The position numbers were made by a program, and so were the translations under genes. A stretch of DNA of 64,000 nucleotides from Syncephalis fuscata S228 (lineage: Eukaryota > Fungi > Zoopagomycota). The stretch lies in NCBI GenBank assembly GCA_025786725.1, contig JAHLTZ010000016.1, positions 248,001 through 312,000 of the forward strand. The letters are read 5' to 3'. Shown here piece after piece: positions 40,621 to 64,000 of this stretch (positions are counted from its first letter, which is position 1; every line of letters begins with the position of its first letter). The notes under the pieces were generated by a model. The model ran no database searches and was not told where the DNA came from. It worked only from the letters and a program-made list of their open reading frames with translations.

Positions 40621-42339
40621 CTAGAATAGTGGCATCGAGTCAAAGTCAGTAAGCGAAAAGTCTTTGCCATTGACCGGCGCAAATGCTGATAGCTGTGCCA
40701 GTGTAACCGGCGTGCTAGTAGGCCATGCCATCCATGCTGTTTCTGAGGTATGGTTTTCAGATGGCATTGAAGTGACAAGTAGTTGCTGATTGTCGGTTTT
40801 GGCTACTACGGCCGCCGCAAGTGCCTGTAGTACATCGGGCTTAAAGCAGTTGTCGGTCGGCGTTAATGCTGGATAGCTGCTGGGTATTTCGCCATTTATA
40901 TTCATCGATACTGGCATAGTAAGCGGCGATGGCGATGAAGCCATAGACGAAGTAACAGCCGTTGCCGTTGGTGGCGGTGTCGGCGTTGGTGATAGCACAC
41001 CAGTGTGTCCGGCTATTGCAGGTGGCAGCGAAGCATCACGTGATGGCGCGGTACTTGCATAAGAATCGACGACTGATACAGCTGCAACAAACGCGGCCGC
41101 ATCTGTGTCGTTTTGCGATGTTAACGGCGCTGAGGGCACGCAAGATTGGCTGTTATTGAAAAGCATTGCGGCGGCGGCCGATGTGTTGGGTGCCATCGTG
41201 ACCGGCATTGTCGGCAATGTTCGTGGTGGAGTCAGGTGAAAAACCGATGAAATAGGCGATTGGCTACTGTGTGATGGTGCCATTGACATCGATGGTAAAG
41301 CAAAGTGAGCAGCCATCACAGCAGCAGCAGCCTCAGGACTCGAAAGCGAGTGATGTGGGAAGCTTGGTGATTGGATATGCGAGGCCATATTCATCGCGTT
41401 TTGCAGATGATAAGGATGTGCTGTCGCCTGTTCGCAAATTCGAGCTGCAAGCGTGTTGTCGGCTCCGTGTGGACTGACGCTTTCTGCAGGAGAGATCGCT
41501 AGACCGGACATCCTTCGTGGCGTATTGCCTCTATGCGGCTGACGACGCAACTCTACGCTTCCAGATAGTCGGAAGGAGCGTGCATGGCGTCGAATGTGCT
41601 TTTTAAGATCATGGGAGCGCTTAAATGTTCCGCCACAGAGCTAAATAAAATAAATAAATAGTTAGTTGTTGATTAATAATTGTAGATCGCCCATTATTAG
41701 TGATTAGTATTAAAAGATCATGTGAAATCAACATAATAGCACCGCCATTAAATAAAACCATTCTCACTCTGCCCCTTTGTGCACGCATCTGTGTTGTTGT
41801 GACGTAATTGATGTACACGCTTGTCCATAAAGGGTGCATCCATGTGCATCAAAATAAAGTACCCGAATAATCAAAATAGATACACACACACACGACACAC
41901 GAAACCAGGCACATGGAAAGCTTACCTCACACTCAAATGGCCTAAATGGTACGTGCACCTTAAGGTGCGATGTAATGTGATCGCGCTTCAGTGTTCTGAC
42001 GCCACATTGTGACCAACGACACTCTAAACAACGATTGCCTTGACGAAAACGACCAATGTGTTCATCGCAAAGATGACGATATAGCGATGTTGGATCTGGA
42101 TACACTTGCCGGCAATCATCCCACTGGCACTGTAGTCCATCTTCATGTTTGACACCACCACCAATGTCTGTGCCAATATCCGTATCGATAGGGACCATTG
42201 GTACTGACATGGATGGATAAGACTGTGATGGCACCATCGGTGGCTCCGACATCATACTATTGGACGTATCATTCTCGGCCGTATTGGTGGCTGGCAGGCT
42301 TGTTTGCCATGCAAAGAAATCTTGCAATTGCTGGTCCAT
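40621..42339 (-). CDS. PacC/Rim101-family C2H2 transcription factor, paralogue A (intron 41641-41925)
   Basis: CQWDDC...HLCDEHIGR...CRWSQC...[40 protein letters not shown]; Ala/Ser/Pro-rich tail containing YPAL. Confidence 0.88.
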
Positions 42340-44600
42340 TGCTTGTTGGTGCAAATTCTGCAGCCCAGATGAATTGAAAAAAGAAATCAAATTAATAAGA
42401 GAATCACTTATAGTCAAAATCTAATGTGCTTCGATAATGATAAACTATTTCTTTCAAAGGCACCAATAATCGTAATTTCCTATGGAATAAAAGGAAAAAA
42501 CAACGATCAAATCACTAGGGAGAGGGGCGGTAAGATGTTAACGCTACTAATGCCAGCGAGGAGAAGACGAGGGGAAAGGAGCACTAGAACTATGGTTTGG
42601 TTCACGCGGGGAGATGAATAAACGATAAATGAACAGTGTAAACTGAGGTTAAGCAATAAACTGCTTTGTATAAAATATACTTTGTAATAAAAGAATCACT
42701 TGTAAATAATTGCTTGTAAAAAGTTCAGCTGACCAACAAGGGGAGGCAAGTGAGCAGGGGTAACTAACTAATAAGGAGTTAGTAAACGTTGAGCAGTTGA
42801 TGAGGTTAAAAGTGGGAAAAAAGCTATGCTATTGTGTTATTGAACTGAATAACAAAAAAGGTAGTTTGCGCAACGCAGCACAAATGATCAATCGGCAGAA
42901 GAACAATGAAAAGTAGGAAGGTGCGATGTTTGTCAAAGGCCAGCAAATAAAGTTGAAGAACAGAAAGTATAAACAGGGTTCAGATCCAAATAAAAATCAG
43001 GAGACAGCAGGGTGCCTGTGTGTACGCGCGTTTGTGGAGTGCGTCCAAGCGATCTTGCTATGCTTTCCCCGTTAATTGCTCGTTTTGCTTGCAGAACGAA
43101 CCAAAAATTAGGGGATTGATGTAGCGATCACACAATAACAACAAAGCAGAAAACGATGAAGAATAAAAAGACGAAGACGATAAAATGGCGATGGCGACGA
43201 CGACGACAAAGAAGAGTCAAGGGGCGAACCAATCGGTAAAGACTAGAAAAAGGAGATGGAACAAGGCAAGATGAAAGCAAGTAGAAGAGCAAATAAAGAT
43301 TCAACGGTAGGAAAGGGGCCGATAGAGATACGACTACACTTCGTGTATAGATGTATATCTATGTTGATGAATATAGTGTGGAAAAGAGTGATATGTATGT
43401 TTACGTGCTTATACGCGCGCGCGTACACGTAAAGAATGGAGACGTTGATTGATTTAGGTAATTTCGAAAAACAAAGATGGTAAATAGAATGGAACGCGTA
43501 CTGGTCCGTAAAAAAAGTAAGCAAAGTGGTGTCTCACCGGAGCGTGGCACAAATAGCGGAGGTAAGAGTGATATTGATGCGATGGATGTGTTGCGGAGGA
43601 TTTTAAGAAGAATGGAGCAAAGGCCAATAAATGGGCAATGCCGATAGCAGCAGCGCAGAGAGAGAGAGGGAGTATGAGAGGGAGTGAGTAAGCAATAAGC
43701 AATAAGCTAGAGACGACGATGACAGCGATATGTACCGCGTGGAAACGATGCACCGCGTGTGCACGGAGAACTAGGGAGCGTGAGGGTCAGGCGGACAATG
43801 ATTGAAAATATAGATAGATAGTCAATGGTGAACACTGCACAGATGAACCGGTCAAGACACGCAGCTTGACGACACGCACAGAGCAGTGGGAGTATATACG
43901 TTGTAAATAGATAACGATATTATTAGCACACGCTCGTGTACATGTATGTGTGTTTGAATCTTTGACTGGTTGTGCTGTACAGTAGCAATGGCGATAGCAG
44001 TAAATGTGATAGCAGTAAATGTGCCGCTTTTTTGCAGCACTAATTAGATATTAATAGAGTGCATAAGCGCAATAATGCGACGATCAAACAGCTGGCAACA
44101 GATACGGACGATGGAGACAAGGGGGGTGAAAAAATAGTAGATGCTTTAGGATATTGTGTTGTGAAATGTAAATAAATTGGTAAACACACACACAACACAA
44201 ATGTATAAAATCCAATAATAGCAAGTTAGAAAATGGGTAAGTAAAAATTTAAAGTAAAAGTCAATGGTAAATAAAATCACCAATTGCTGATAAAAATAGA
44301 AAGATAATAATAAAAGTAAGCGATAAGTGATGGATTGTGGTCGGTGGCGAGCTGTACACTTGTATGTTTGACTTTCAAAGCAAAAGTTTCTTGCACAATA
44401 CACGTACCTTTTATTTCGAAATATGTTGTAACCAGTTCACTTGCTATAGCAGGTACGTAAATGTTCAAAGTGTCGGATCGGCAACTTTGATGGTCGAGCA
44501 AAGCAGTCACACTTAGCTAGACCAATATTGGTACTGTCCCTGCGTGGCCTATACAAACTCTTTCTGGTCAGGCAATTAGAAGTGTATAGACAACAACACT

Positions 44601-46448
44601 GCCAAGCGTTAACTCGATGCATTTGGTTGTCAGAATAGTTGCCTTGGCATAAAGTTGGGTGTGAGGGTGATCTCTTTGCCCATGCTCATGGTAAATAATC
44701 CGGCTTTTAATCATGACATCATTCCTATTTAATAGCAAAATTACTAAATCAGGTTTGAATGAAAATTATCCGCCTGATCGGCGTTATTAGTGTTAAATAG
44801 CGCCGATAGTATTTAGCGCTATAATATAAATACAAATTCTGTAGTAATTATATTACTGCTTTTTACAGCCAATAAATTATTCATACTTTAGATGTTAATC
44901 CACTCAACTTGACAAAGGCATACCGTTTGCGTATATTCACATACAGGGCCGCACGTGCCTGTAAAACGCTTTTTTACTATTAAAGAGACGTATGCTTCGA
45001 CTATCTATCACATATAGTAATTGATGGTTGTTTTGGGCACATGTGGAAATGCCATCTGCACGGCAAAGACCGAGCAATGGTCGTACCGGCCGAGTAAAGT
45101 GCGAAAACGCCATGTAGTTTCTGACCAGTTTATCAGTTAGGGCGCACGCACCTACGCCCACACATGATTGCGTATATTCTCCTATTAGCTTACGCGTACA
45201 CAAATGATTTACAAGCTTGTGCCGAGCACATTTTAAAATCAGCAAGAGGCCCAATAAGCGGGGATAAGCCTTACAACTTTGTACATGGCCTTGGGACAAT
45301 TGCCCAATCGATAGTGCAGCGAGTGGTCAGATGTTATTACTACAACAAGGCCGACTTATCATTTGACACTTGGTATGCATCCAGGCACATGTATAGGCAA
45401 TAGACAATGGCCAAAAGGCTTATTCACATGCGGGATGTGCACACCGTATACTGAATTGTGTCTTTTTAATTTGAACGCGTGTTCAGCTCATGTACTTTTT
45501 TTGTTAGCTTACTAATTTTATCATGCTTTTACAGCGTTATAAACATGCGTTCAAAAATAATATATTTGGCCGCTTGCTACTATTAAAATTTTGCTCATAT
45601 TGTACATCAATAAACACACTATAATAATCACTACACTGATAACACAGCCATTCTATACTATCCTATAATATCGCACACACACTAGCCGGTAAGGCCAAGC
45701 ATAGCAACTATAGCTTGCGCTAGCGCTTGGCTAGCGCTAATCAAACAGCTGCGGAGCATTACTGTTTTTAGTAAATACTCATTTAGCTAAAAAGATTATT
45801 GTAAAACTATCGATGCCAGTCTAAACAAGAATCCCTGCATTAGAATCTGCAATTGTATTGCAAAAGATATTTGGCGCTAATTGTTCACTTATCGCCAAGC
45901 GTATGAATAGACGCGTAGTTCATACTAAAACAAGCGTTTTCCCTAATTGATACCGTGGCCAAGCATATGGCTACCAACTGTAATTATGACGCAGACCAAA
46001 TCAACCACTAACTTGCATATTTATTGCCGTGCAGCGGCCACTCTCACTAATTGCGCAACTGCAACCAATATCGGTTCACTTGGCCCCTTCTGTCTTATTT
46101 TGCAAAGAACCCACCCAAACTTACGATAGTTCGTGCCACCATGCTATCACGTGTGTGTTTTAGTCGACTAAATCGGGTCAACATACATTAATACTATGCA
46201 CAGTAGATTGAACTTTACTAAAAATTAAGAGTGTAAAGAAGGAAAAGGTGCGTAGAAATATTTATGGCTCAGACTACAAGAGTGATAGCGGCAAAACTCA
46301 TCTTTCTCCGAGATACATACCTGTCAAAGGGCTCATGTCCGTTTTCCTTGTTGAAAGCGCTCATAAACGTCATTTTTCGAGCTGTGCCCAGCCAAACATG
46401 CATGTGTGTAACATTGCGGCCATTACAGTCCAATCATCTTCGCTTGGC
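44601..46448. promoter_or_regulatory. Cluster of 8 GCCAAG PacC consensus sites upstream of paralogue A
   Basis: GCCAAG or CTTGGC at 44601, 44643, 45694, 45726, 45894, 45958, 46079 and 46443. Confidence 0.7.
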
Positions 46449-46971
46449 CATACACCACGATAAATGTGCACCAATCGCCGATGCAATAGCAAGTATCACG
46501 GTTAACCAAAATAGCACGAGGTTTTTGTAATGGAGTATGGTCAGTAATGCAACCATCATATTTTATTAATAGTCTGCAGCAACAAAAACATAGCCAGTCT
46601 TTTTTTACTAATCATAAAGTAATATTTATTAAATAAAAATAACGCTAGTTGATATCAAATATATCCAAAGTATGAGATAATAATGGATAATTTAATGCCG
46701 TTTATTACTATGGCGTTCCCACAATAAATGAGGCATATCCATTTTCTACTGTCTAAACAACTGCGATACAGATAACAGGAAATTGAATATATAAAACTTT
46801 CAAATAGCTTCATTATTCAAGCTCAATAGTCACGGCAAAAAGAAACGCCAGTGAGTACAAACGATAACAATACTAAATGGGGTAGGAAAATGTCACTAGC
46901 AAAAGAAAGTAAAAAGCTGCTAAGCCTCAAATAGGATAAAACGAAGTATAATTGATTTAGACAGCGCTAAA

Positions 46972-49532
46972 TCAGTTCACTTCTTGAGTACTACCATACT
47001 CATTCGGCGAGTCTAGTAACTGCCAATGGGAGGCCGATGCGTTCTTCTTTGGTGTAGATGAACTTGCTTTGACCTCTTGCTTGTGGAATAAAAGACTGAC
47101 TTTTTCCAATAATGCTTCAACAAGTGCTTTATGCTGCTGCCTTGTTTTGTAGTCCACTGCTGTTTTCCAAGCGGGTGTTCGCGCTCCAGCAGATCCTGCT
47201 TCGGCAATACGATGAATATGCGGTTCAGGCATGCTGCTGGACTGATGTGTAACCGTTGGCTGCGACGGTAAGGCTGGGCGTGGTGCACTCGGACGTACAC
47301 CGCCTCCGGTAACAGAGAGCCCACCCATTTGCTCCGTAATGCTATCAACATTCACATTTATAAAGTCGCTATCATCGATGTATTGCATTTGGATGTTAAA
47401 CGGTTCCGCTTTAGGCTTGCCAGGCATGCTATTGGCAGTTGCCGACGATCTGTACACTGCACATTCAGGATATTTTTTTGGTTGCGGTGATGGCTGTCGA
47501 TTTATACTTGTACCCGCTACTCGTGCCGATTGTAGAGATGATTCTCTTGATGGTGCTGGCATGGCAGAAGTAGATCCATGCTGGTGCGGACTACGATGTC
47601 CAGAACCAGACGATGTATTATGATGATTATACATTACTTCGCGTTGTGGTAGCATGACATGCCGCTGTACTTCAATGGGTCTATAGCCCACAATAGCCGG
47701 TTGTGGATACAATGGCATACGGGTCATTCCAGGCATAGCTTGAGTCTTAAGTGCGTGGCCAGGCATAATAACCGGAACTGTTCGCGCACTAGGTTCTACA
47801 CGATGTTCACGCGAAAATGTAGCTACAGGCTTAATGTCAGGCTGGATGTCGGCGTTAAAGCTGGTGTGTGGAGGCGCACTGGGTGTAGGATAAGCATGCG
47901 CTGTGCCAACAGGCACATTGTACATTGTCGGGGTGATTTGTTGCGGTACTGTGACTGGCATACCATTGAAACTGGTTGCAAATGAATCCGACGGCGATCG
48001 TGACCGTGATTGAGTGGCACCCAAGTCTGGGAAGAGCGACTGTCCAGGCAGAGAGCCAGGTGTTGGCCAGTCTGGCACGCCGCTTTCAAGTACATATCCT
48101 GGCGAGACTGGATAGCCATTAATTGTTGGAACAGGCATGGGTGATTTACTTGGCGTACGATATGATCCTAGTGCTGGATCTTGCGACTGAGGAGTCATTA
48201 TAACGACAGGTGATGGATACAAGTCGTTATTTGCCGTTGCTGCCAATGACAATTGCTCCATAGTGGCCTGATCGACCTTGAATGCACTTTCAACATTTGC
48301 CATCGTTGCTGTTGGCTGTTGACGACTTGCCAATAGTTCATCTGAGCACATGTCCAAATTGACATATTGATTTACGTCTTGGCTCGGCTCTTGATCGATA
48401 TTATCGTTGAGTGAAAGACAAAATTGTTCAAGCAACATTTGATCCTGCTCCGTTTTAAGTGACACTGGCAACTCATTTAATTGAGGGATGATGGGTGCTA
48501 TTTCGTTTAACCATTTAATCATGCCTATACAACATATATATATTATTAGTAAATCTATAATAACCAAATATTGCCTTTCTTTTCCTTCTATTGCCTATTA
48601 CAAATCCACATTTATATTATATTTACCTAAATCGTAATTTGGTTCCATACGTTGCTTTTTTATACAATCTACAAAATCACCAATCAAATCAATGCCACGT
48701 TTAGAATTACCGGCATAAGACTCGGCTGGCCCTGTAGTGGATGCATTCAGTGGATTGGGCATAGCACTATATGCCTGATTAAGCATTGGATTCGATACAG
48801 GTGCCGTAGCCATATTTGAAGCAAGATAGCCAATAGGCATATCATCGTCATCTAGTTTAAGCGGTTGATATACTGGTTCTAAATTAATGGGTTTAATTAA
48901 TTAGAATACACTCAATAGCAAGCATTGGTTGTTAGCTTACCTGCCGGTGATGATATACGGTGCTGTTCATAATTAGAACCAGACGGTGACGCCACACCTA
49001 GTTGCGGAAACATAGCCTGCGAGTAGTCCAAAGGCGTGGTGTACGGCCCAGGTGATGGCGATAGTGTTGATGTGGCTGTTGATGGCGTCAACGATCCCAT
49101 AGACTCGGGAGAGGTAGGTAGTAGTAGCGAGTTGGGCGTATGCGGTGTTTGCATACCGTCAATATCGCCTTCTTGTTCCGCTTGGTGCACTTTGTCATGT
49201 TTTTTTAAATCCTGTGGACGTTTAAAAAACTTGTGACAACGCTAATAACGTGTTCGTTTATGGTTAATCAAAGGTGCACCATGTTACACAATACTTACCG
49301 GGCACTCATAAGGCGTAAAAGGAATATGTCGTCGAACATGAGATGTTATATGATCGCGCTTGCTAGTCTTGGTCGTGCAGTCGCCCCAGTGACAGTCGAG
49401 ACAAAGATTGTTCGTTGCTTTGCGTCCAATGTGATTCGTGCACACATGCGTGAACAACACCTCTGCATCTGGCGCACTATATAAACAATTACGCCATTGG
49501 CAGCTTAAAACGCGAATCATGTCCGAGTCCAT
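46972..49532 (-). CDS. pacC: Canonical-type PacC/Rim101 pH-response transcription factor, paralogue B, 4 exons
   Basis: N-terminal fingers CQWRNC...[19 protein letters not shown]...KRDHITSH...[18 protein letters not shown]; conserved [24 protein letters not shown] block; long C-terminus. Confidence 0.88.
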
Positions 49533-49894
49533 CGAAGAATAGTTTGCTAACTTGACCGTTAAACAGAAAAAACAACAGAACCAAGTAAGACAAAGTAAGT
49601 GCCGGCCTGTTTTGCCTAAACCAAAAAAGTGGTCCGAATGAATAGAAGATAACAGTAATAGGGGCTAGAAGCTGCCGTTACAAGTGCTGTTATTATCAAT
49701 AAATGGGCTGGAGTCGAAAATAACGGTACAAATGGTATATGTCTGTGTGTCTGCGTGCGTGTGTGTAGTTGAAAGGAAAGCGATAGTAATGAAAGTTGAT
49801 AAGTAGAGAAAAGGAGATAAAAAGCCAATGGAATAAATGGGAAACTAATCATCCGAGTCTGAATGTGAGAGTGTATTTGAATACTATTCTAAAA

Positions 49895-50488
49895 GCCAAG
49901 AAATGTTTTTTTGACTACTCTTGGCCAACTCCCATCGGCATCACGAGTAACAGAGTTCATCAGGTGAAATGGTAGAATGGTCAGCATCACCATCATCAAT
50001 ACCATTTACGACCTTGCTAAGGTAGACTTTAGTTCTTTGATACAAAGCGTGCCGTAATATTCATCAATAAAGACCGGTTGTGCTTATAATAAGCCATGCA
50101 ACATTTCAATGGTCTACCGGTTAAAATAAGAAAAGGGCCTGGCTTATCATATGTATAATAATAGCTCAAACAATAAATAAACCACTCATTCGCTATACTA
50201 TTAAGCATGTTTTACCGGTGTAAATGTATGTAGATAGCGTAGGTTGGATATGCATAGGCTACGTTGGCCATAGACAAGTTCTTTTTTTGGAAGGTGTCGT
50301 ATGTTTCCACGAATAGAATAGCCCGATAAAAACGATCAATCGACTTGATATAATTTCTTGGCAAAAAAGATTACTAGTCTTTAGTACGAAAATGGCTCCT
50401 CTGTTTACCTTAGCGAGTATCAAGGGTGTTTGCCATGTAAATATACGAGTCCCTTGTCAATTTGACATTGCTATTAATCTAAGCCAAG
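49895..50488. promoter_or_regulatory. Five GCCARG sites in the divergent pacC-B / PSD promoter
   Basis: Sites at 49895, 49920, 50138 (CCTGGC), 50357 and 50483. Confidence 0.65.
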
Positions 50489-50928
50489 TAATTGACGCTC
50501 TATACTTGCTTTTGCCCTTCGAATAAGCTTTATACCGACAGTCAGGTAACTAGCGCTGATCATTAGCTATTTAGTAGTTCTATTTAAATGCCAACTTTAT
50601 TTAATGCTTATCCAAAAGTGGTAAATCTTTATTCAATTAATAAAAAAGGCTGCGGATACATAGAGATAACGCGTGCACATACACAAACACTTAATACAAA
50701 CTATTGGATAAGTACTACTGGTTGCTAATGCATATTTAATGCAACAATCTATTTTTATCTATATATGGCACGTGGTGACACAAACCGCCTTGTTTAGTTG
50801 GTTCATGACTTGATATTGCTGCTGTTAGTCGATGTTATGGCTGTTGTTGACGTCGTCATCACTACTACTTTATAGCCAATACTTCTTTGCTGTTTTACTA
50901 TTTACTATTATTGGAGAAATACAAAGGT

Positions 50929-52862
50929 ATGAGTTCCTTTGCACCCAAGTTGAAACAGTTTACCAACAAGGTACTGAACAAGTCGGCCAAGTCCTCTAAA
51001 ACAGCTGAGACAAAGCAAAATGAGGTGCTAGTCGAGATTACTGAGTCTGTTGCTGTGGACACGGTTGCTGTTGAGGAAAATAATCCGGGCAGCGCTTTAG
51101 GTGAAAATTTCGCTGAGCCATTGGATCTAACTCAGTTTGAACTGGCTGGCGATGGTGTGAAGTTCGATGATGGTGGCGATTTGAAGGGAATAGATATTGA
51201 TTTTATCAATTCAATGTATGCTCAAGATAATGCACTTGGACTTGTTCAGGTAATAAAATACAAATGTTTAAAAGATAATTTATGATGTAGCAACTAACTG
51301 TACTGATGTTGATATCGATATAGAGTCTAATATTGCTGGCCAACAATAAGGATGAAGGTGGCATTGGTAATTAATGTTGCTGTTAACTCATCAGTGATAC
51401 TGAATGGCTAATTATAAATGATATATAGTTGAAAACGGTATATTATCACACGATGCTTTAGCACATAAAGCAAGCACTGAATCAGGCTTACTGTCCAGTC
51501 TTACTTTACAGCCATGGTATGAACGTATATTGGGATATTTACCTTTACCAATTAGCATTCGACGCAAGTTTGGCGTCTATGTTGTTGATCGTAAAGTAAT
51601 ATTATTTAATTTTTGTGATGTATATTTTGACGTTTTATTAAATTGCGTAGACAAACGAAAAACAATACGAGGCTATGCCTATGTATGTTCGTATTGGTAT
51701 AAATCTACTTTATGTTGGATACTGGAAAGAAAAATGTAAGCGGTTCTAATGAACGAATAAAAGTTGCTAATTCTATTGAATAGTAATTCAAACTGGCGTA
51801 TTAGATGCTATTTTACGGCATGAAACGCTTAAACAAGGTCGTTATTTTGACTCATCAGAATCTGTAAAACAGATACCATCATTTATTAAAACATACAATA
51901 TTCTATGGATGAAGTATTGACTCCTAGTATTTCGTCGTTTAATACGTTTAATGAGTTTTTCTATCGCAAGTTAAATTCTGATGCTCGGCCAATTGCTAGT
52001 CCTTTGGATGAGGTAATTAACAATTAAGGCATAAATTAAATATCACTGAGGTTTACATTACTATTACAGCGTGTTGTCATATCCGGATGTGATTCAAGAC
52101 TCATTGTTTTCCCCAAAATTGAAGAAGCAACAAAGTTTTGGTAAGTAATTTGATTACAATAAAAATCAGCGACTAATGATTGACAATAGGATTAAAGGAA
52201 AACATTTCAATTTGGCTAATTTAATACAAGATGATGAATTGGTATAGAAATGATATTATAAGTGCAATAGCTACTAATTTGTTTTAATTATATTTATTTG
52301 AATTATGTTAGGCTAAACGATTTGAAGGTGGATCGATAGCTATATTCCGATTAGCGCCGCAAGATTATCATCGTTTCCACGCACCCATTGCTGCCACTTG
52401 CACCAGCAGTCGAATTATTCCAGGCAAATATTATACAGGTAAAAAAAACAAGCCAATTTACATCAGTACGATAAGTAACGCGGTTGTATTATACTAAATT
52501 TAGTAAATCCACTGGCCATTAATTCCCAAATCGATGTTCTGACCGAAAATACCCGTACTGTACACACGTTCACTACAGTTACCGACGACAAGTACACAGC
52601 AAAGTTAGAATCGCCGTTTGATTTTGTTATTGTGCCAGTGGGCGCAATGATGGTCGGCAGTATCAAATTGACGGGCGCACAACCGGATGTGCATACTCGC
52701 AAGGGAGATGAATTGGGCTATTTTGCATTTGGTGGTAGCACTGTAGTGGCGGTATTCCCACCTCGCGCAAATATCCGCTTCGATGCAGATCTTTTAGACA
52801 ACGCGTCCAACGGGCTTGAAACTTTGGTTAAAATGGGAGAGCCAATTGCTATTATTGGATAA
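50929..52862 (+). CDS. Phosphatidylserine decarboxylase, PSD2-type (GGST), no evident C2 domains, multi-exon
   Basis: YEAMPMYVRIG, FNEFFYRKLNSDARPI, FRLAPQDYHRFH, VGAMMVGSI, KGDELGYFAFGGSTVV. Confidence 0.92.
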
Positions 52863-53795
52863 TAACCGGAAATTGATGACCTTTGTAGCCAAAATTGTTG
52901 ATCTGGATGACGATAGTTTAAAAGATATTATTGCAACTACATTTTATTATGCTAATATTGAGTTATGATTATACTATGCACTTATGCTAATAAAGGAAAT
53001 ATTACATAATAGTATAATTTACGTATGCTTTGATAATTTGATTTTTGTAATCTATTATGTATTGTAAGTGTAATCATGAATAAAATGCATTCTTTTGCTT
53101 GTTTTATACTTGCTCGCTAATGGCCGAGCAGTTGGTGTACAAATTTAAGCGGAGATGCTGGGAAGTTTGAAATGTCTATACAAAGTGTCGATGAGAAATG
53201 TTGATGAACTAATAAAATAGCTTAAAATAAGACCATGTGAACAAATGTAGCCAATATCTCATATTGATGCAGTAAGAATTTCATTACTACCAATTAAGCA
53301 TTCCAATAAATGAATGTTTGCATGGCCGCTATAAAGTAACGGCTTATGACAGCGGAACGAGAATAGCCCATCAAATGCTTTGACTACAAATTTAACAATG
53401 ATTTCTGTACATTCGATGCTATTACAGACGTTAGAAAACAACAACAGTAGCATGTAATTAGCCGCTGGATTAACAACGATACTACTCACAAATGGTAGAA
53501 AGCAGGCTATTGGGTGCAGAGTCAATTGAAAAATATTGTATAATAGAAATGAAAGTGACAAGCAAACAGTTGCTATTGGTGATAAGTTTTCTAAAACATA
53601 TAGAAATCATTTGTGATGTAAATTAAGCAAGATTGAAAGTAAAAAGAAACAGAAACGAGTACAATAGAACAAGCTATAAGCCTACATAAAGGAAGGTAAT
53701 GCTGTTCATAAGCATAAACTATAGTTGCGTAGAAGCTGCGTGCAAGATTGAAAAAAACAAATACGGCTGTAGTGTAATTGCAATGTAAAATACGC

Positions 53796-55512
53796 TTAGG
53801 GTGCGTAAGATTTTTCCATGTGACGGCGTAAATGACGTTTAAGAGCAGGATTACGCTTAAAATTGCGGCCGCATAACTAAGAAGAAAGGATGAGTGTTAG
53901 TATTAATAATCTATAAAAATGCTTAGTCAACGCTTACCTTACAGGTTAAAGGCCAATATGGCACGTGCAAACGGATGTGAGAAATAATGTGGTCCCGTTT
54001 GCGTGCAGATACACGACAGTCGCCCCATTCACAGTGCAGACTAAGGTGACCAAGTGCGCGACGACCGATATGTTCCTCGCTAACGTGGTGCATCAATAGA
54101 GCCGCTTTATCAAACTCCAATAGGCAGCCACGCCATTCACAACGATAGGCCAATGAAGCGGTATCGGCACTAGCGCATGAGGAAATTTCCGTATGCGACG
54201 GTATACCTTGTGGATGTCCATATTCATCCAAGGATAAAGGAAGTAATGCTATCGGTGATTCTGACTGATTAGAATAAGACATAAATCTTTCGGATTCCAA
54301 ATATCCATGTTGATAAGAATGAAAATGTGCTTCAGATGCAATAGTCGCATCACTGGTCACGTTTAGACTATTTTGAGCATTGCTGCTACTTGATGCTGTA
54401 TATAGCCAATTATTATGAGCGGCAACACCATTAAAATTATGAAATTGTGCCGTTGAATTAGGCAATGACTCTTGGCTATGGGCGTGACCCATATTAGTGG
54501 CGCAGTTTTGTGCCAAAGAGCCAGAGTTCAAGGAGGGCAATGATGCTATAAAGCCGAGTTTGTGCTGCTGCGGTCTCAGGGACAACTGATGGTGGACATA
54601 GTATGACGACTGAGGCTGCGATGATTGATACGAATAAACAGATGCCGATCGAGCTGATCCATTTACTACCGGGGCAAGATCAACTGGTGAAACATTGCTC
54701 ATAGTCAAGTTGAGATTGTTTTCGTGTCCTTGATTAATTCTTGCAGATAAATCCGAAACAGCCAAGCAGGGAGAAAACTCGAGTTGTGATGCAACCGGAA
54801 TAACGCTTTTTGCCGAGGCTGCAAAAGGTGTCGAAGCTTGCGACCAGCGCTGCTCGTTGGGAAGTGTCGTTGCTGTAATGTTTTGCGGCACAGCGGGCAT
54901 AAACGAAGCTGCCAGCGACGATACCTGGCTAGGTGGATAGACAGAATGAGAATAGTGTGGCGACGTATTTACGTAGGATGTAGGGAGAGTATGTTTTGCT
55001 GACATATTTAAGTCGTGCAGTATTATTTGCTGTGTGACAGGGGCATATGGTAGTGACGATGTAATCAGTGCTGCTTGGGTGACGGCTAGCTCCGCTAATG
55101 CACCTTCCATCTGAGATTTATTTTCGCGCTGCAAAGAATGTGCATCTGAATGGGGAGGAGAATAGGTAGATCTGGCGCTTTGCATAAGTTCTGGAACTGG
55201 TGATGCAGCAGATAGCGATGTTGGTAAATTCAAATATATAGGGACTACAGGTATATTATTTTCGGGCGACATCGTAGCTGCAGCAGATGGAAACATATTA
55301 TTTTCTGAAATAGAAACAGAAATATTATTTGTAATAACTGAACTTGTAGTCGATGCAGCAGCTCGGTTAATTGGTAGCGAGTTTGGATGGTATATTTCAG
55401 CCCGAACGGACCGAGCAGCAGAAGCAATCGGTGAGTAGGTGGAAAGTGCTACTTCTTTAGAGGATGGCACTGCAATAATAAACGGATTTTGAGAAACGAA
55501 CGCTTCAGTCAT
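53796..55512 (-). CDS. PacC/Rim101-family paralogue C with zinc fingers at the extreme C-terminus, 2 exons
   Basis: About 455 aa of low-complexity N-terminus, then CEWRGC...HVSEEHIGRR...CEWGDC...KRDHIISHIRLH...TCK/LCGRNFKRNPALKRHLRRHMEKSYAP*. Confidence 0.85.
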
Positions 55513-63562: not shown

Positions 63563-64000
63563 CTAGATATGTGCAGCGGTTAAAGACGCCACCTGCCATG
63601 TCGACGAGTCTAATGATTGATCCGTCATGCCAAAAAGAAGAGGAAGCTCTGGCTCAGTGTTATCGGCCATCGCCGCTCCAAGCATGGCTTTTGAATTTAA
63701 GACGTCATTAGGATCTTGCCAAAAATCATGCACATCACTAGGATTGAATGGATACTGGCCGGTATACTGCAATGGCGATTGTTGTTGTAGCTGTTGGTGT
63801 TGATAGTGATGATGATGCTGCTGTTGTTGTTGTTGCTGCTGGAACTGGTCCATGCTAATGCTAGTATTGATGCCCGACAAGAGCTCATGGGTAAGGAATG
63901 CATCGGCTGGCATACCGAGTAATAGATTGGCATCCAATGTGGCATACATGTCGGGGACAGAAGGGGGCGAGTTTAACAACAGCGTGCTATCATGAGCATT
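63563..64000 (-). CDS. 3' end of a gene encoding a polyQ/H low-complexity C-terminus (possibly a transcription factor); starts beyond the window
   Basis: GC-rich open frame running to the window edge with a Q/H tract; stop at 63563. Confidence 0.6.
   Translation of the reverse strand, partial: NAHDSTLLLNSPPSVPDMYATLDANLLLGMPADAFLTHELLSGINTSISMDQFQQQQQQQQHHHHYQHQQLQQQSPLQYTGQYPFNPSDVHDFWQDPNDVLNSKAMLGAAMADNTEPELPLLFGMTDQSLDSSTWQVASLTAAHI

Follow-up and report, generated by a model that had tools for sequence, protein, structure and literature searches.

Three C2H2 zinc-finger genes, here named A, B and C, lie on the minus strand of a 64,000-nucleotide (nt) stretch of the genome of the mycoparasite Syncephalis fuscata (order Zoopagales); this whole stretch (contig C68:248001-312000) is referred to as the window. 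In the explanation that we favor, with a probability of roughly 0.7, the three genes belong to an old nine-gene array derived from PacC/Rim101, with B as the PacC ortholog and A and C as paralogs held under constraint. PacC/Rim101 is among the best-studied end-points of fungal signaling and is nearly always encoded by a single gene, and the residues with which it reads DNA hardly vary.

Three PacC-type genes with different domain layouts

Open reading frame listing and frame translation placed A, B and C on the same strand and gave each the plan of PacC/Rim101: three C2H2 fingers, of which the first two carry CxWxxC and the first also H-x4-H. Exon joins were obtained by a scripted search for GT..AG introns. 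Exons were searched singly; only for the alignment and the tree were the halves of a finger domain, encoded by two exons, put together. The splice sites of B exon 3 were predicted from GT..AG ends, the reading frame and colinearity with orthologs.

Gene A
41926..42339, minus strand: exon 1, encoding 70 residues ahead of finger 1, then fingers 1 and 2 and finger 3 as far as its first Cys
41641..41925, minus strand: predicted finger-3 intron, 285 nt, GT..AG, phase 0
40621..41640, minus strand: exon 2, encoding the second half of finger 3 (RSHDLKKH), a 320-residue C-terminal region and the stop codon
Gene B
49299..49532, minus strand: exon 1, with the start codon, 10 residues, then fingers 1 and 2
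49242..49298, minus strand: finger-3 intron, 57 nt, RNA-supported, with CT..AC ends as read on the plus strand
48941..49241, minus strand: exon 2, encoding the second half of finger 3 (RPQDLKKH); exon start fixed by the RNA joint
48627..48878, minus strand: exon 3, encoding the PacC post-finger motif, with local matches to basidiomycete and Coemansia PacC
46972..48524, minus strand: exon 4, with the stop codon and a long C-terminal region that has conserved motifs close to its end
Gene C
53938..55512, minus strand: exon 1, encoding a low-complexity N-terminal region of 457 residues, then fingers 1 and 2 and finger 3 as far as its first Cys
53877..53937, minus strand: finger-3 intron, 61 nt, skipped by a transcript contig
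53796..53876, minus strand: exon 2, encoding the second half of finger 3 (RNPALKRH), seven further residues and the stop

The predicted proteins have 477 residues for A, with 70 before the first Cys of finger 1, and 779 residues for B, with 10 before that Cys. C has 551 residues and is identical to the NCBI model P0121, a hypothetical protein; its first Cys follows 457 residues and its stop codon comes seven residues past the last His of finger 3. The original prediction, made from the letters of the window, of three co-oriented three-finger PacC-type genes with these helices and layouts was confirmed by translation and joins, including the placement of the fingers near the N-terminus in B, after 70 residues in A and at the extreme C-terminus in C.

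A nine-gene array with an ancestral intron

A six-frame search of the genome with B exon 1 returned further copies on the contig, which on reading gave nine three-finger genes of the same plan within ~58 kb (C68:289-347 kb), namely A, B, C, P4, P5, P6, P7, P8 and P9, with unrelated genes interspersed. Most fungi have one PacC, whereas S. fuscata has nine linked family members, and what had been described as a triplet is in fact the left end of this array. P6 (C68:325200-325750, equivalent to window positions ~77200-77750 and outside the window; helix HATGLNRH) ends seven residues after finger 3 as C does, so the tail-less layout is present twice in the array.

The finger-3 intron is found in seven of the nine members, P8 (RRQDLKKH) and P9 (HQSDLKRH) being without it. 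In A, B and C, it is in phase 0 and falls between the two middle residues of the finger-3 CxxC; orthologs of A carry a long intron at the matching place (323 nt in contig L024 and 136 nt in contig L022). This shared intron had been read as proof that the genes arose by local duplication, an argument that fails because Mucor lusitanicus and Mycena belliarum have an intron at the same position in their canonical PacC genes (it is absent in Coemansia guatemalensis). The intron is therefore ancestral and no marker of the duplication that gave A, B and C. As for local duplication itself, the three genes do come out as PacC-family paralogs, but the array appears to predate the split of Syncephalis and Thamnocephalis and is not a recent triplet.

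B as the putative PacC ortholog

A maximum-likelihood tree was built from 58 finger domains and 89 columns. B-type proteins form a clade (support 97/96) inside the canonical Dikarya/Mucorales/Coemansia PacC/Rim101 clade (94/87), while all non-B Zoopagales types fall outside the canonical clade on long branches. In an approximately unbiased (AU) test, a single clade of all 18 Zoopagales rows was not rejected (p = 0.505), the constrained tree being 0.7 log-likelihood units better, so one Zoopagales radiation from a single PacC fits the data.

Outside the fingers, B alone matches canonical PacCs, through the post-finger motif of exon 3 and a C-terminal stretch. It is colinear over its whole length with the B proteins of Thamnocephalis and S. 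plumigaleata, the latter at 50% identity over 573 residues in exon 4. B further resembles PacC/Rim101 in having RPQDLKKH as its finger-3 helix, an extended C-terminal region and a promoter with GCCARG sites. Judged by these features, B is the retained PacC ortholog.

A and C also group with the PacC family in searches and domain labels. When A exon 1 was compared with 1.84 billion proteins, two A-type clusters were followed solely by PacC/Rim101-type proteins; P0125, which shares the MDQQLQ start region, is an A ortholog at 65% identity over exon 1. Pfam labels finger 1 of A, B and C as Zap1_zf1 or Zap1_zf2, as it does in canonical PacCs. Beyond the window, the finger region of P8 matches named PacC and RIM101 proteins at 60-66% identity. 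Phylogeny and synteny, which the original prediction had proposed as a check, fit membership of A, B and C in the PacC family, with B as the canonical member.

Finger-3 recognition helices of A and C

The fingers that read GCCARG in PacC are the second and the third, finger 1 being packed against finger 2 (PMC10301932, PMC12193740). The finger-2 helix of PacC/Rim101, KRDHITSH, is identical in A and B and one residue off in C (KRDHIISH), the change falling at non-contact position 5. The finger-3 helices are RSHDLKKH in A, RPQDLKKH in B and RNPALKRH in C. A census was taken of the 230 retrieved proteins of the family in which fingers 2 and 3 are complete: KRDHITSH was present in 222 (97%) and RPQDLKKH in 214 (93%). 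B, with both, has the canonical DNA-reading residues that had been assigned to it.

The helix of A differs from the canonical one at positions 1 and 2 only. That of C is changed at positions 1, 2, 3 and 6, which alters three of the four canonical finger-3 contact positions (Q to P at 2, D to A at 3 and K to R at 6), and among the 230 proteins RNPALKRH is confined to Zoopagales. RSQDLKKH, with the Pro-to-Ser change of A alone, occurs in a cluster holding Malassezia furfur RIM101, and RLHDLKKH, with its Gln-to-His change, in Tortispora caseinolytica. Both are single-copy Rim101/PacC-type proteins with one of A's two substitutions each, so the re-programming of A may be slight. The earlier claim of re-programmed finger-3 helices thus holds in that the helices of A and C differ and are conserved in orthologs, and is tempered for A by the single occurrence of each change elsewhere. 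A and C may have variant DNA specificities.

Orthologs, gene order and selection

Each helix type has counterparts in other Zoopagales. The A type (RSHDLKKH) was found in S. fuscata and two metagenome-derived contigs, L022 and L024; the B type (RPQDLKKH) in S. fuscata, Thamnocephalis sphaerospora and contig L020; and the C type (RNPALKRH, seven residues, stop) in S. fuscata, Thamnocephalis (P0123), L020 and L021. Among the genes beyond A to C, the P4 type (RRPDLTAH) is present in S. fuscata and Thamnocephalis, and the P8 type reads RRQDLKKH in these two and RRQDLRKH in Piptocephalis tieghemiana. The S. plumigaleata ortholog of A is colinear with it across exons 1 and 2, a comparison of colinearity in which the helix had no part; exon 2 is conserved end to end at 63% identity over 357 residues. 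Since the helix differences of A and C are kept by their Zoopagales orthologs, they have been maintained and are not the product of drift.

Gene order is conserved on both sides of B. The order P4-DDHD-DUF7729-C-PSD-B, in which PSD denotes a phosphatidylserine decarboxylase gene, is kept in Thamnocephalis, and its C-PSD-B part is also present on a metagenome contig. The order B-A-Bap31-DUF3245-Zuotin is kept in S. plumigaleata. From this distribution, the paralogs are old and would predate the Syncephalis/Thamnocephalis split.

The non-synonymous divergence (dN) of the fingers from the orthologs compared is 0.07-0.17 for A and C and 0.31-0.38 for B. Synonymous divergence (dS) exceeds 1.5 or is not computable for A, B and C even against the nearest relative, the synonymous sites being saturated. 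As part of the whole explanation favored here, A and C are probably functional paralogs under purifying selection. The retained ortholog B is the faster-evolving copy in S. fuscata (49299-49532 compared with L018:15739-15948).

Transcription and splicing of B and C

One public RNA run covers the locus, with contigs aligned over 49150-55149. The contigs carry ten GT..AG joints over this interval, eight of them within the PSD gene, and these ten spliced joints identify the run as a transcriptome. One contig skips 49242-49298, which is the finger-3 intron of B; another skips 53877-53937, the finger-3 intron of C, and otherwise runs unbroken from 52606 past 55149. Both genes are thus transcribed, with the predicted splicing, and the early stop of C is real. 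A lack of expression of A and C, named in the original prediction as evidence that would speak against it, does not apply to C.

The transcript contig over C (52673-55078) differs from the genome at 10 positions, nine of which are transitions. The difference at 54035 turns His493, in the first strand of finger 2, into Arg, the residue found in all C orthologs. The differences suggest allelic or strain variation between the RNA and DNA samples. The C-carrying contig also extends ~1.2 kb past the C stop (52606-53876) to the 3' end of the convergent PSD gene, whose last exon runs to 52862; the extension is either a long 3' untranslated region or a product of overlapping convergent transcripts merged by the assembler.

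C-terminal regions and the Pal/Rim pathway

Full-length PacC/Rim101 regulators are characterized by two successive C-terminal cleavages under the Pal/Rim pathway and by YPXL/I motifs, bound by PalA/Rim20, on either side of a signaling protease box. Proteolytic activation of PacC is documented for Ascomycota. The protein is made as an inactive precursor that is activated by removal of its C-terminal part, in which PalA binds YPXL/I motifs (PMC10301932), and truncated PacC has been reported to act independently of pH (PMC6994591). C has no such part in any of four taxa, and a control that works by cleaving off a C-terminal inhibitory domain, as in PacC, is therefore closed to it. This absence favors the earlier view that C is uncoupled from proteolytic control; C would then escape proteolysis.

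The C-terminal region of A is unrelated to the canonical PacC tail. It carries YPAL, replaced by YPEL in S. plumigaleata, and a conserved acidic-hydrophobic end. No YPX[LI] motif was found in B of S. fuscata, S. plumigaleata or Thamnocephalis. B differs in this from PacC/Rim101 of Dikarya, where all but one of the proteins checked have the motif, and resembles most of the Mucorales (3/16 with the motif) and Coemansia (0/4) PacCs checked. A Pfam search of the S. fuscata genome found calpain-like domains at two loci and the ALIX V-domain at one strong and one weak locus.

GCCARG sites and conserved non-coding blocks

The window contains 51 GCCARG sites (28.8 ± 6 expected from shuffled sequence), clustered upstream of B and between B and A.

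49895..50488, no strand assigned: five GCCARG sites (0.5 expected) in the promoter region common to B and the divergent PSD gene
44601..46448, no strand assigned: eight GCCAAG sites (1.1 expected) in the gene-free spacer from the 3' end of B to the start of A
43825..43877, minus strand: conserved non-coding block of ~53 nt, ~1.5 kb upstream of A, near-identical in S. plumigaleata

P8 has seven sites upstream (1.2 expected), and the 2 kb upstream of C show no enrichment (one site, 0.9 expected). The gene-free spacer upstream of A is 4.6 kb long and has colinear conserved blocks in common with S. plumigaleata. Within it, an inverted GCCAAG pair at 44601/44643 (44601-44648), ~42 nt apart and 2.3 kb upstream of A, has its counterpart at L034:5627/5670 (5627-5675) in a conserved non-coding block of S. 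plumigaleata, where GCCARG enrichment over the B-A spacer is weak (5 versus 3.0 expected). In Thamnocephalis, 15 GCCARG sites lie over 3.2 kb just downstream of B, against 4.8 expected. There is modest support, from these motifs and their conservation, for a GCCAAG-binding family member acting on A, and none for one acting on C. For the regulatory cascade that had been put forward, the conserved GCCAAG pair upstream of A is an indirect point in favor, the upstream sequence of C offering no enrichment; a pH cascade is conceivable on this footing.

In the 1.5 kb directly downstream of the T. sphaerospora B ortholog (L018:18587-20116), twelve GCCARG sites, eleven of them GCCAAG, were counted; this Thamnocephalis cluster mirrors the one downstream of B in S. 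fuscata.

The block at 43825-43877 is conserved even though, in a comparison with a relative of similar divergence, the synonymous sites of A are saturated (dS of at least 1.6). It contains an inverted repeat, GTCAAG-N8-CTTGAC (43851-43870), whose half-sites are one base from GCCAAG. An Rfam scan of the gene-free A-B spacer, block included, gave no match. GTCAAG-N8-CTTGAC was considered as a recurrent site and rejected, with five places in the genome against two for a control pattern.

Proposed origin of the array and competing explanations

In the explanation that we favor, a single ancestral pacC would have been duplicated serially at the DNA level before Syncephalis and Thamnocephalis diverged. 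B would have been retained as the ortholog, with canonical contacts and with N-terminal fingers as in Mucorales PacC. A and C would have kept the scaffold of fingers 1 and 2 and the finger-2 contacts, each fixing a lineage-conserved change in finger 3. In C, nothing would remain past finger 3, and a long N-terminal region would have been acquired; the protein is most likely a DNA-binding factor that works without C-terminal processing, its preferred site departing from GCCARG in the half contacted by finger 3. The site bound by A is most likely similar to GCCARG, and A may in turn be controlled by a family member that binds GCCAAG.

Several points weigh against this explanation. The transcript evidence spans 49150-55149, which leaves A (40621-42339) outside the aligned stretch, and a search with A exon 2 returned only an S. 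plumigaleata fragment and no S. fuscata NCBI model. The 89-column tree has several very long branches and fixes neither the order of the duplications nor the root. The finger region of S. fuscata B is 57% identical to that of Thamnocephalis B, compared with 79% for C. P8, outside the window, keeps the PacC contact residues (RRQDLKKH) and has upstream GCCAAG sites, so sequence alone does not settle which copy does the classical PacC job; the N- and C-terminal regions of P8, which gave no match by local BLAST among 268 retrieved proteins, its own orthologs included, are uninformative in this respect. PalH (PF08733) had no match in a six-frame genome search, with a model for which there was no fungal positive control, and its absence is not claimed; the Pal/Rim sensor may be missing or too diverged for detection, and the Pal pathway may be incomplete. 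Finally, the binding, processing and roles proposed for A, B and C are read from sequence.

An alternative is that A and C bind the same site as B under different control. The GCCARG core would be contacted by finger 2 and by the conserved Arg at position -1 of the finger-3 helix, and A and C would be competitors or constitutive versions of B, as proposed for the truncated pacC of Fusarium oxysporum (PMC6994591). The identical finger-2 contact residues of A, B and C fit this proposal, as do the single-copy Malassezia and Tortispora proteins that bear A's substitutions one at a time, and the truncated pacC_a/b/c, with intact DNA-binding residues, provide a precedent, truncated PacC being reported to act independently of pH (PMC6994591). 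For C, however, it has to accommodate the alteration of three of four finger-3 contact positions and the restriction of its helix to Zoopagales in the census, and the retention of exactly this helix in four taxa points to selection for a particular, different surface. We consider a shared site unlikely.

A and C might instead descend from C2H2 genes outside the PacC family in which a pair of fingers is similarly packed through Trp, for example Zap1, GLI/ZIC or multi-finger genes found elsewhere in this genome. This idea was raised by the Zap1_zf1 or Zap1_zf2 label on finger 1, by GLI, Zap1 and ZIC3 as the nearest solved two-finger matches and by the position of A and C outside the canonical clade in the free tree. 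The label, however, is borne by canonical PacCs as well, and the AU test accepts a clade that includes B. All best matches of A after its own orthologs are PacC/Rim101-type, the finger-2 helix is that of 97% of PacCs, the intron position is common to Mucor and Mycena PacC, and A and C are linked to B in conserved synteny. Such descent, which the original prediction had itself named as a possible objection, is very improbable in the light of the searches, the intron, the synteny and the AU test. We give equally little credence to A or C, or both, being decaying duplicates without function. Transcript contigs cover B and C and not A, and the regions outside the fingers are low-complexity and fast-evolving, as decay would have it; against this stand intact reading frames, type-specific helices kept by orthologs in three or four taxa, dN/dS far below 1, transcription and correct splicing of C and end-to-end conservation of A exon 2 between two Syncephalis species.

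Returning to the favored explanation, an old PacC-derived array, a broader picture can be drawn tentatively, as a possibility with the odds against it. In Zoopagales, the one PacC gene would have given rise to nine or more linked factors that differ in DNA specificity. GCCARG would still be recognized by B, and perhaps P8, which would act on the promoters of further members, A for example, and the tail-less C and P6 would bypass Pal-type gating. Such a small network might sense the fungal host rather than ambient pH alone. To our knowledge, the regulatory biology of the fungus-parasitic Zoopagales, a lineage of obligate parasites of other fungi, is almost unknown. Nine linked derivatives, several with fixed new helices and two tail-less, amount to a natural experiment in the diversification of a master regulator, and the array offers existing variants with which individual bases could be assigned to the PacC residues that read them.

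Comparison with known systems

Compared with PacC/Rim101, A is set apart by its finger-3 helix and a different C-terminal region and C by its finger-3 helix and the lack of a C-terminal region. A full-text literature search found no paper linking PacC/Rim101 with Syncephalis or Zoopagales.

Clinical Fusarium oxysporum carries truncated pacC_a/b/c on lineage-specific chromosomes, with DNA-contact residues kept (PMC6994591). They resemble C in being additional to a full-length ortholog and in missing the inhibitory C-terminus, and their activity is expected not to depend on processing in response to pH. They are, however, strain-specific, recent and transposon-flanked, with unchanged contact residues, whereas the Zoopagales copies are old, syntenic between genera and located among housekeeping genes, with fixed new recognition helices. 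C therefore does not belong with truncated PacCs of the Fusarium type: its tail is absent, but its contact residues are changed and its synteny is conserved.

Multiple PacC genes with the same finger-3 intron also occur in Mucorales, with two in Benjaminiella, Sporodiniella and Zychaea and at least three in Parasitella. The Mucorales copies examined all keep KRDHITSH and RPQDLKKH and fall inside the canonical clade, and none is tail-less. The Zoopagales family is distinguished from both the Fusarium and the Mucorales precedents, as far as its genes can be read, by being old and syntenic and by its diversified recognition helices.

By sequence, fingers 1 and 2 come closest to the solved structures of GLI, ZIC and Zap1 (PDB 2gli, 7t91, 2rpc and 1zw8); a PDB sequence search found no PacC structure. 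These proteins have the Trp-containing tandem finger scaffold and the Pfam Zap1_zf1 label in common with A, B and C, but the similarity is weak (E 1e-4 to 1e-3), and finger number and recognition helices differ.

Neighboring genes and further zinc-finger loci

Two further features of the window were delimited. The PSD gene between B and C is unrelated to the PacC-like family.

50887..52862, plus strand: PSD gene, with eight RNA-supported introns; start approximate
63563..63979, minus strand: probable last exon of P4, the fourth family member, with a predicted join; the fingers lie just past the window end

Elsewhere in the S. fuscata assembly (G000:C46), near-identical zinc-finger copies were observed at 352995-353207 (plus strand) and 398720-398932 (minus strand), in opposite orientation and 45 kb apart. 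This pair has a PacC-like pair of fingers 1 and 2, followed by TGEKP-linked fingers.

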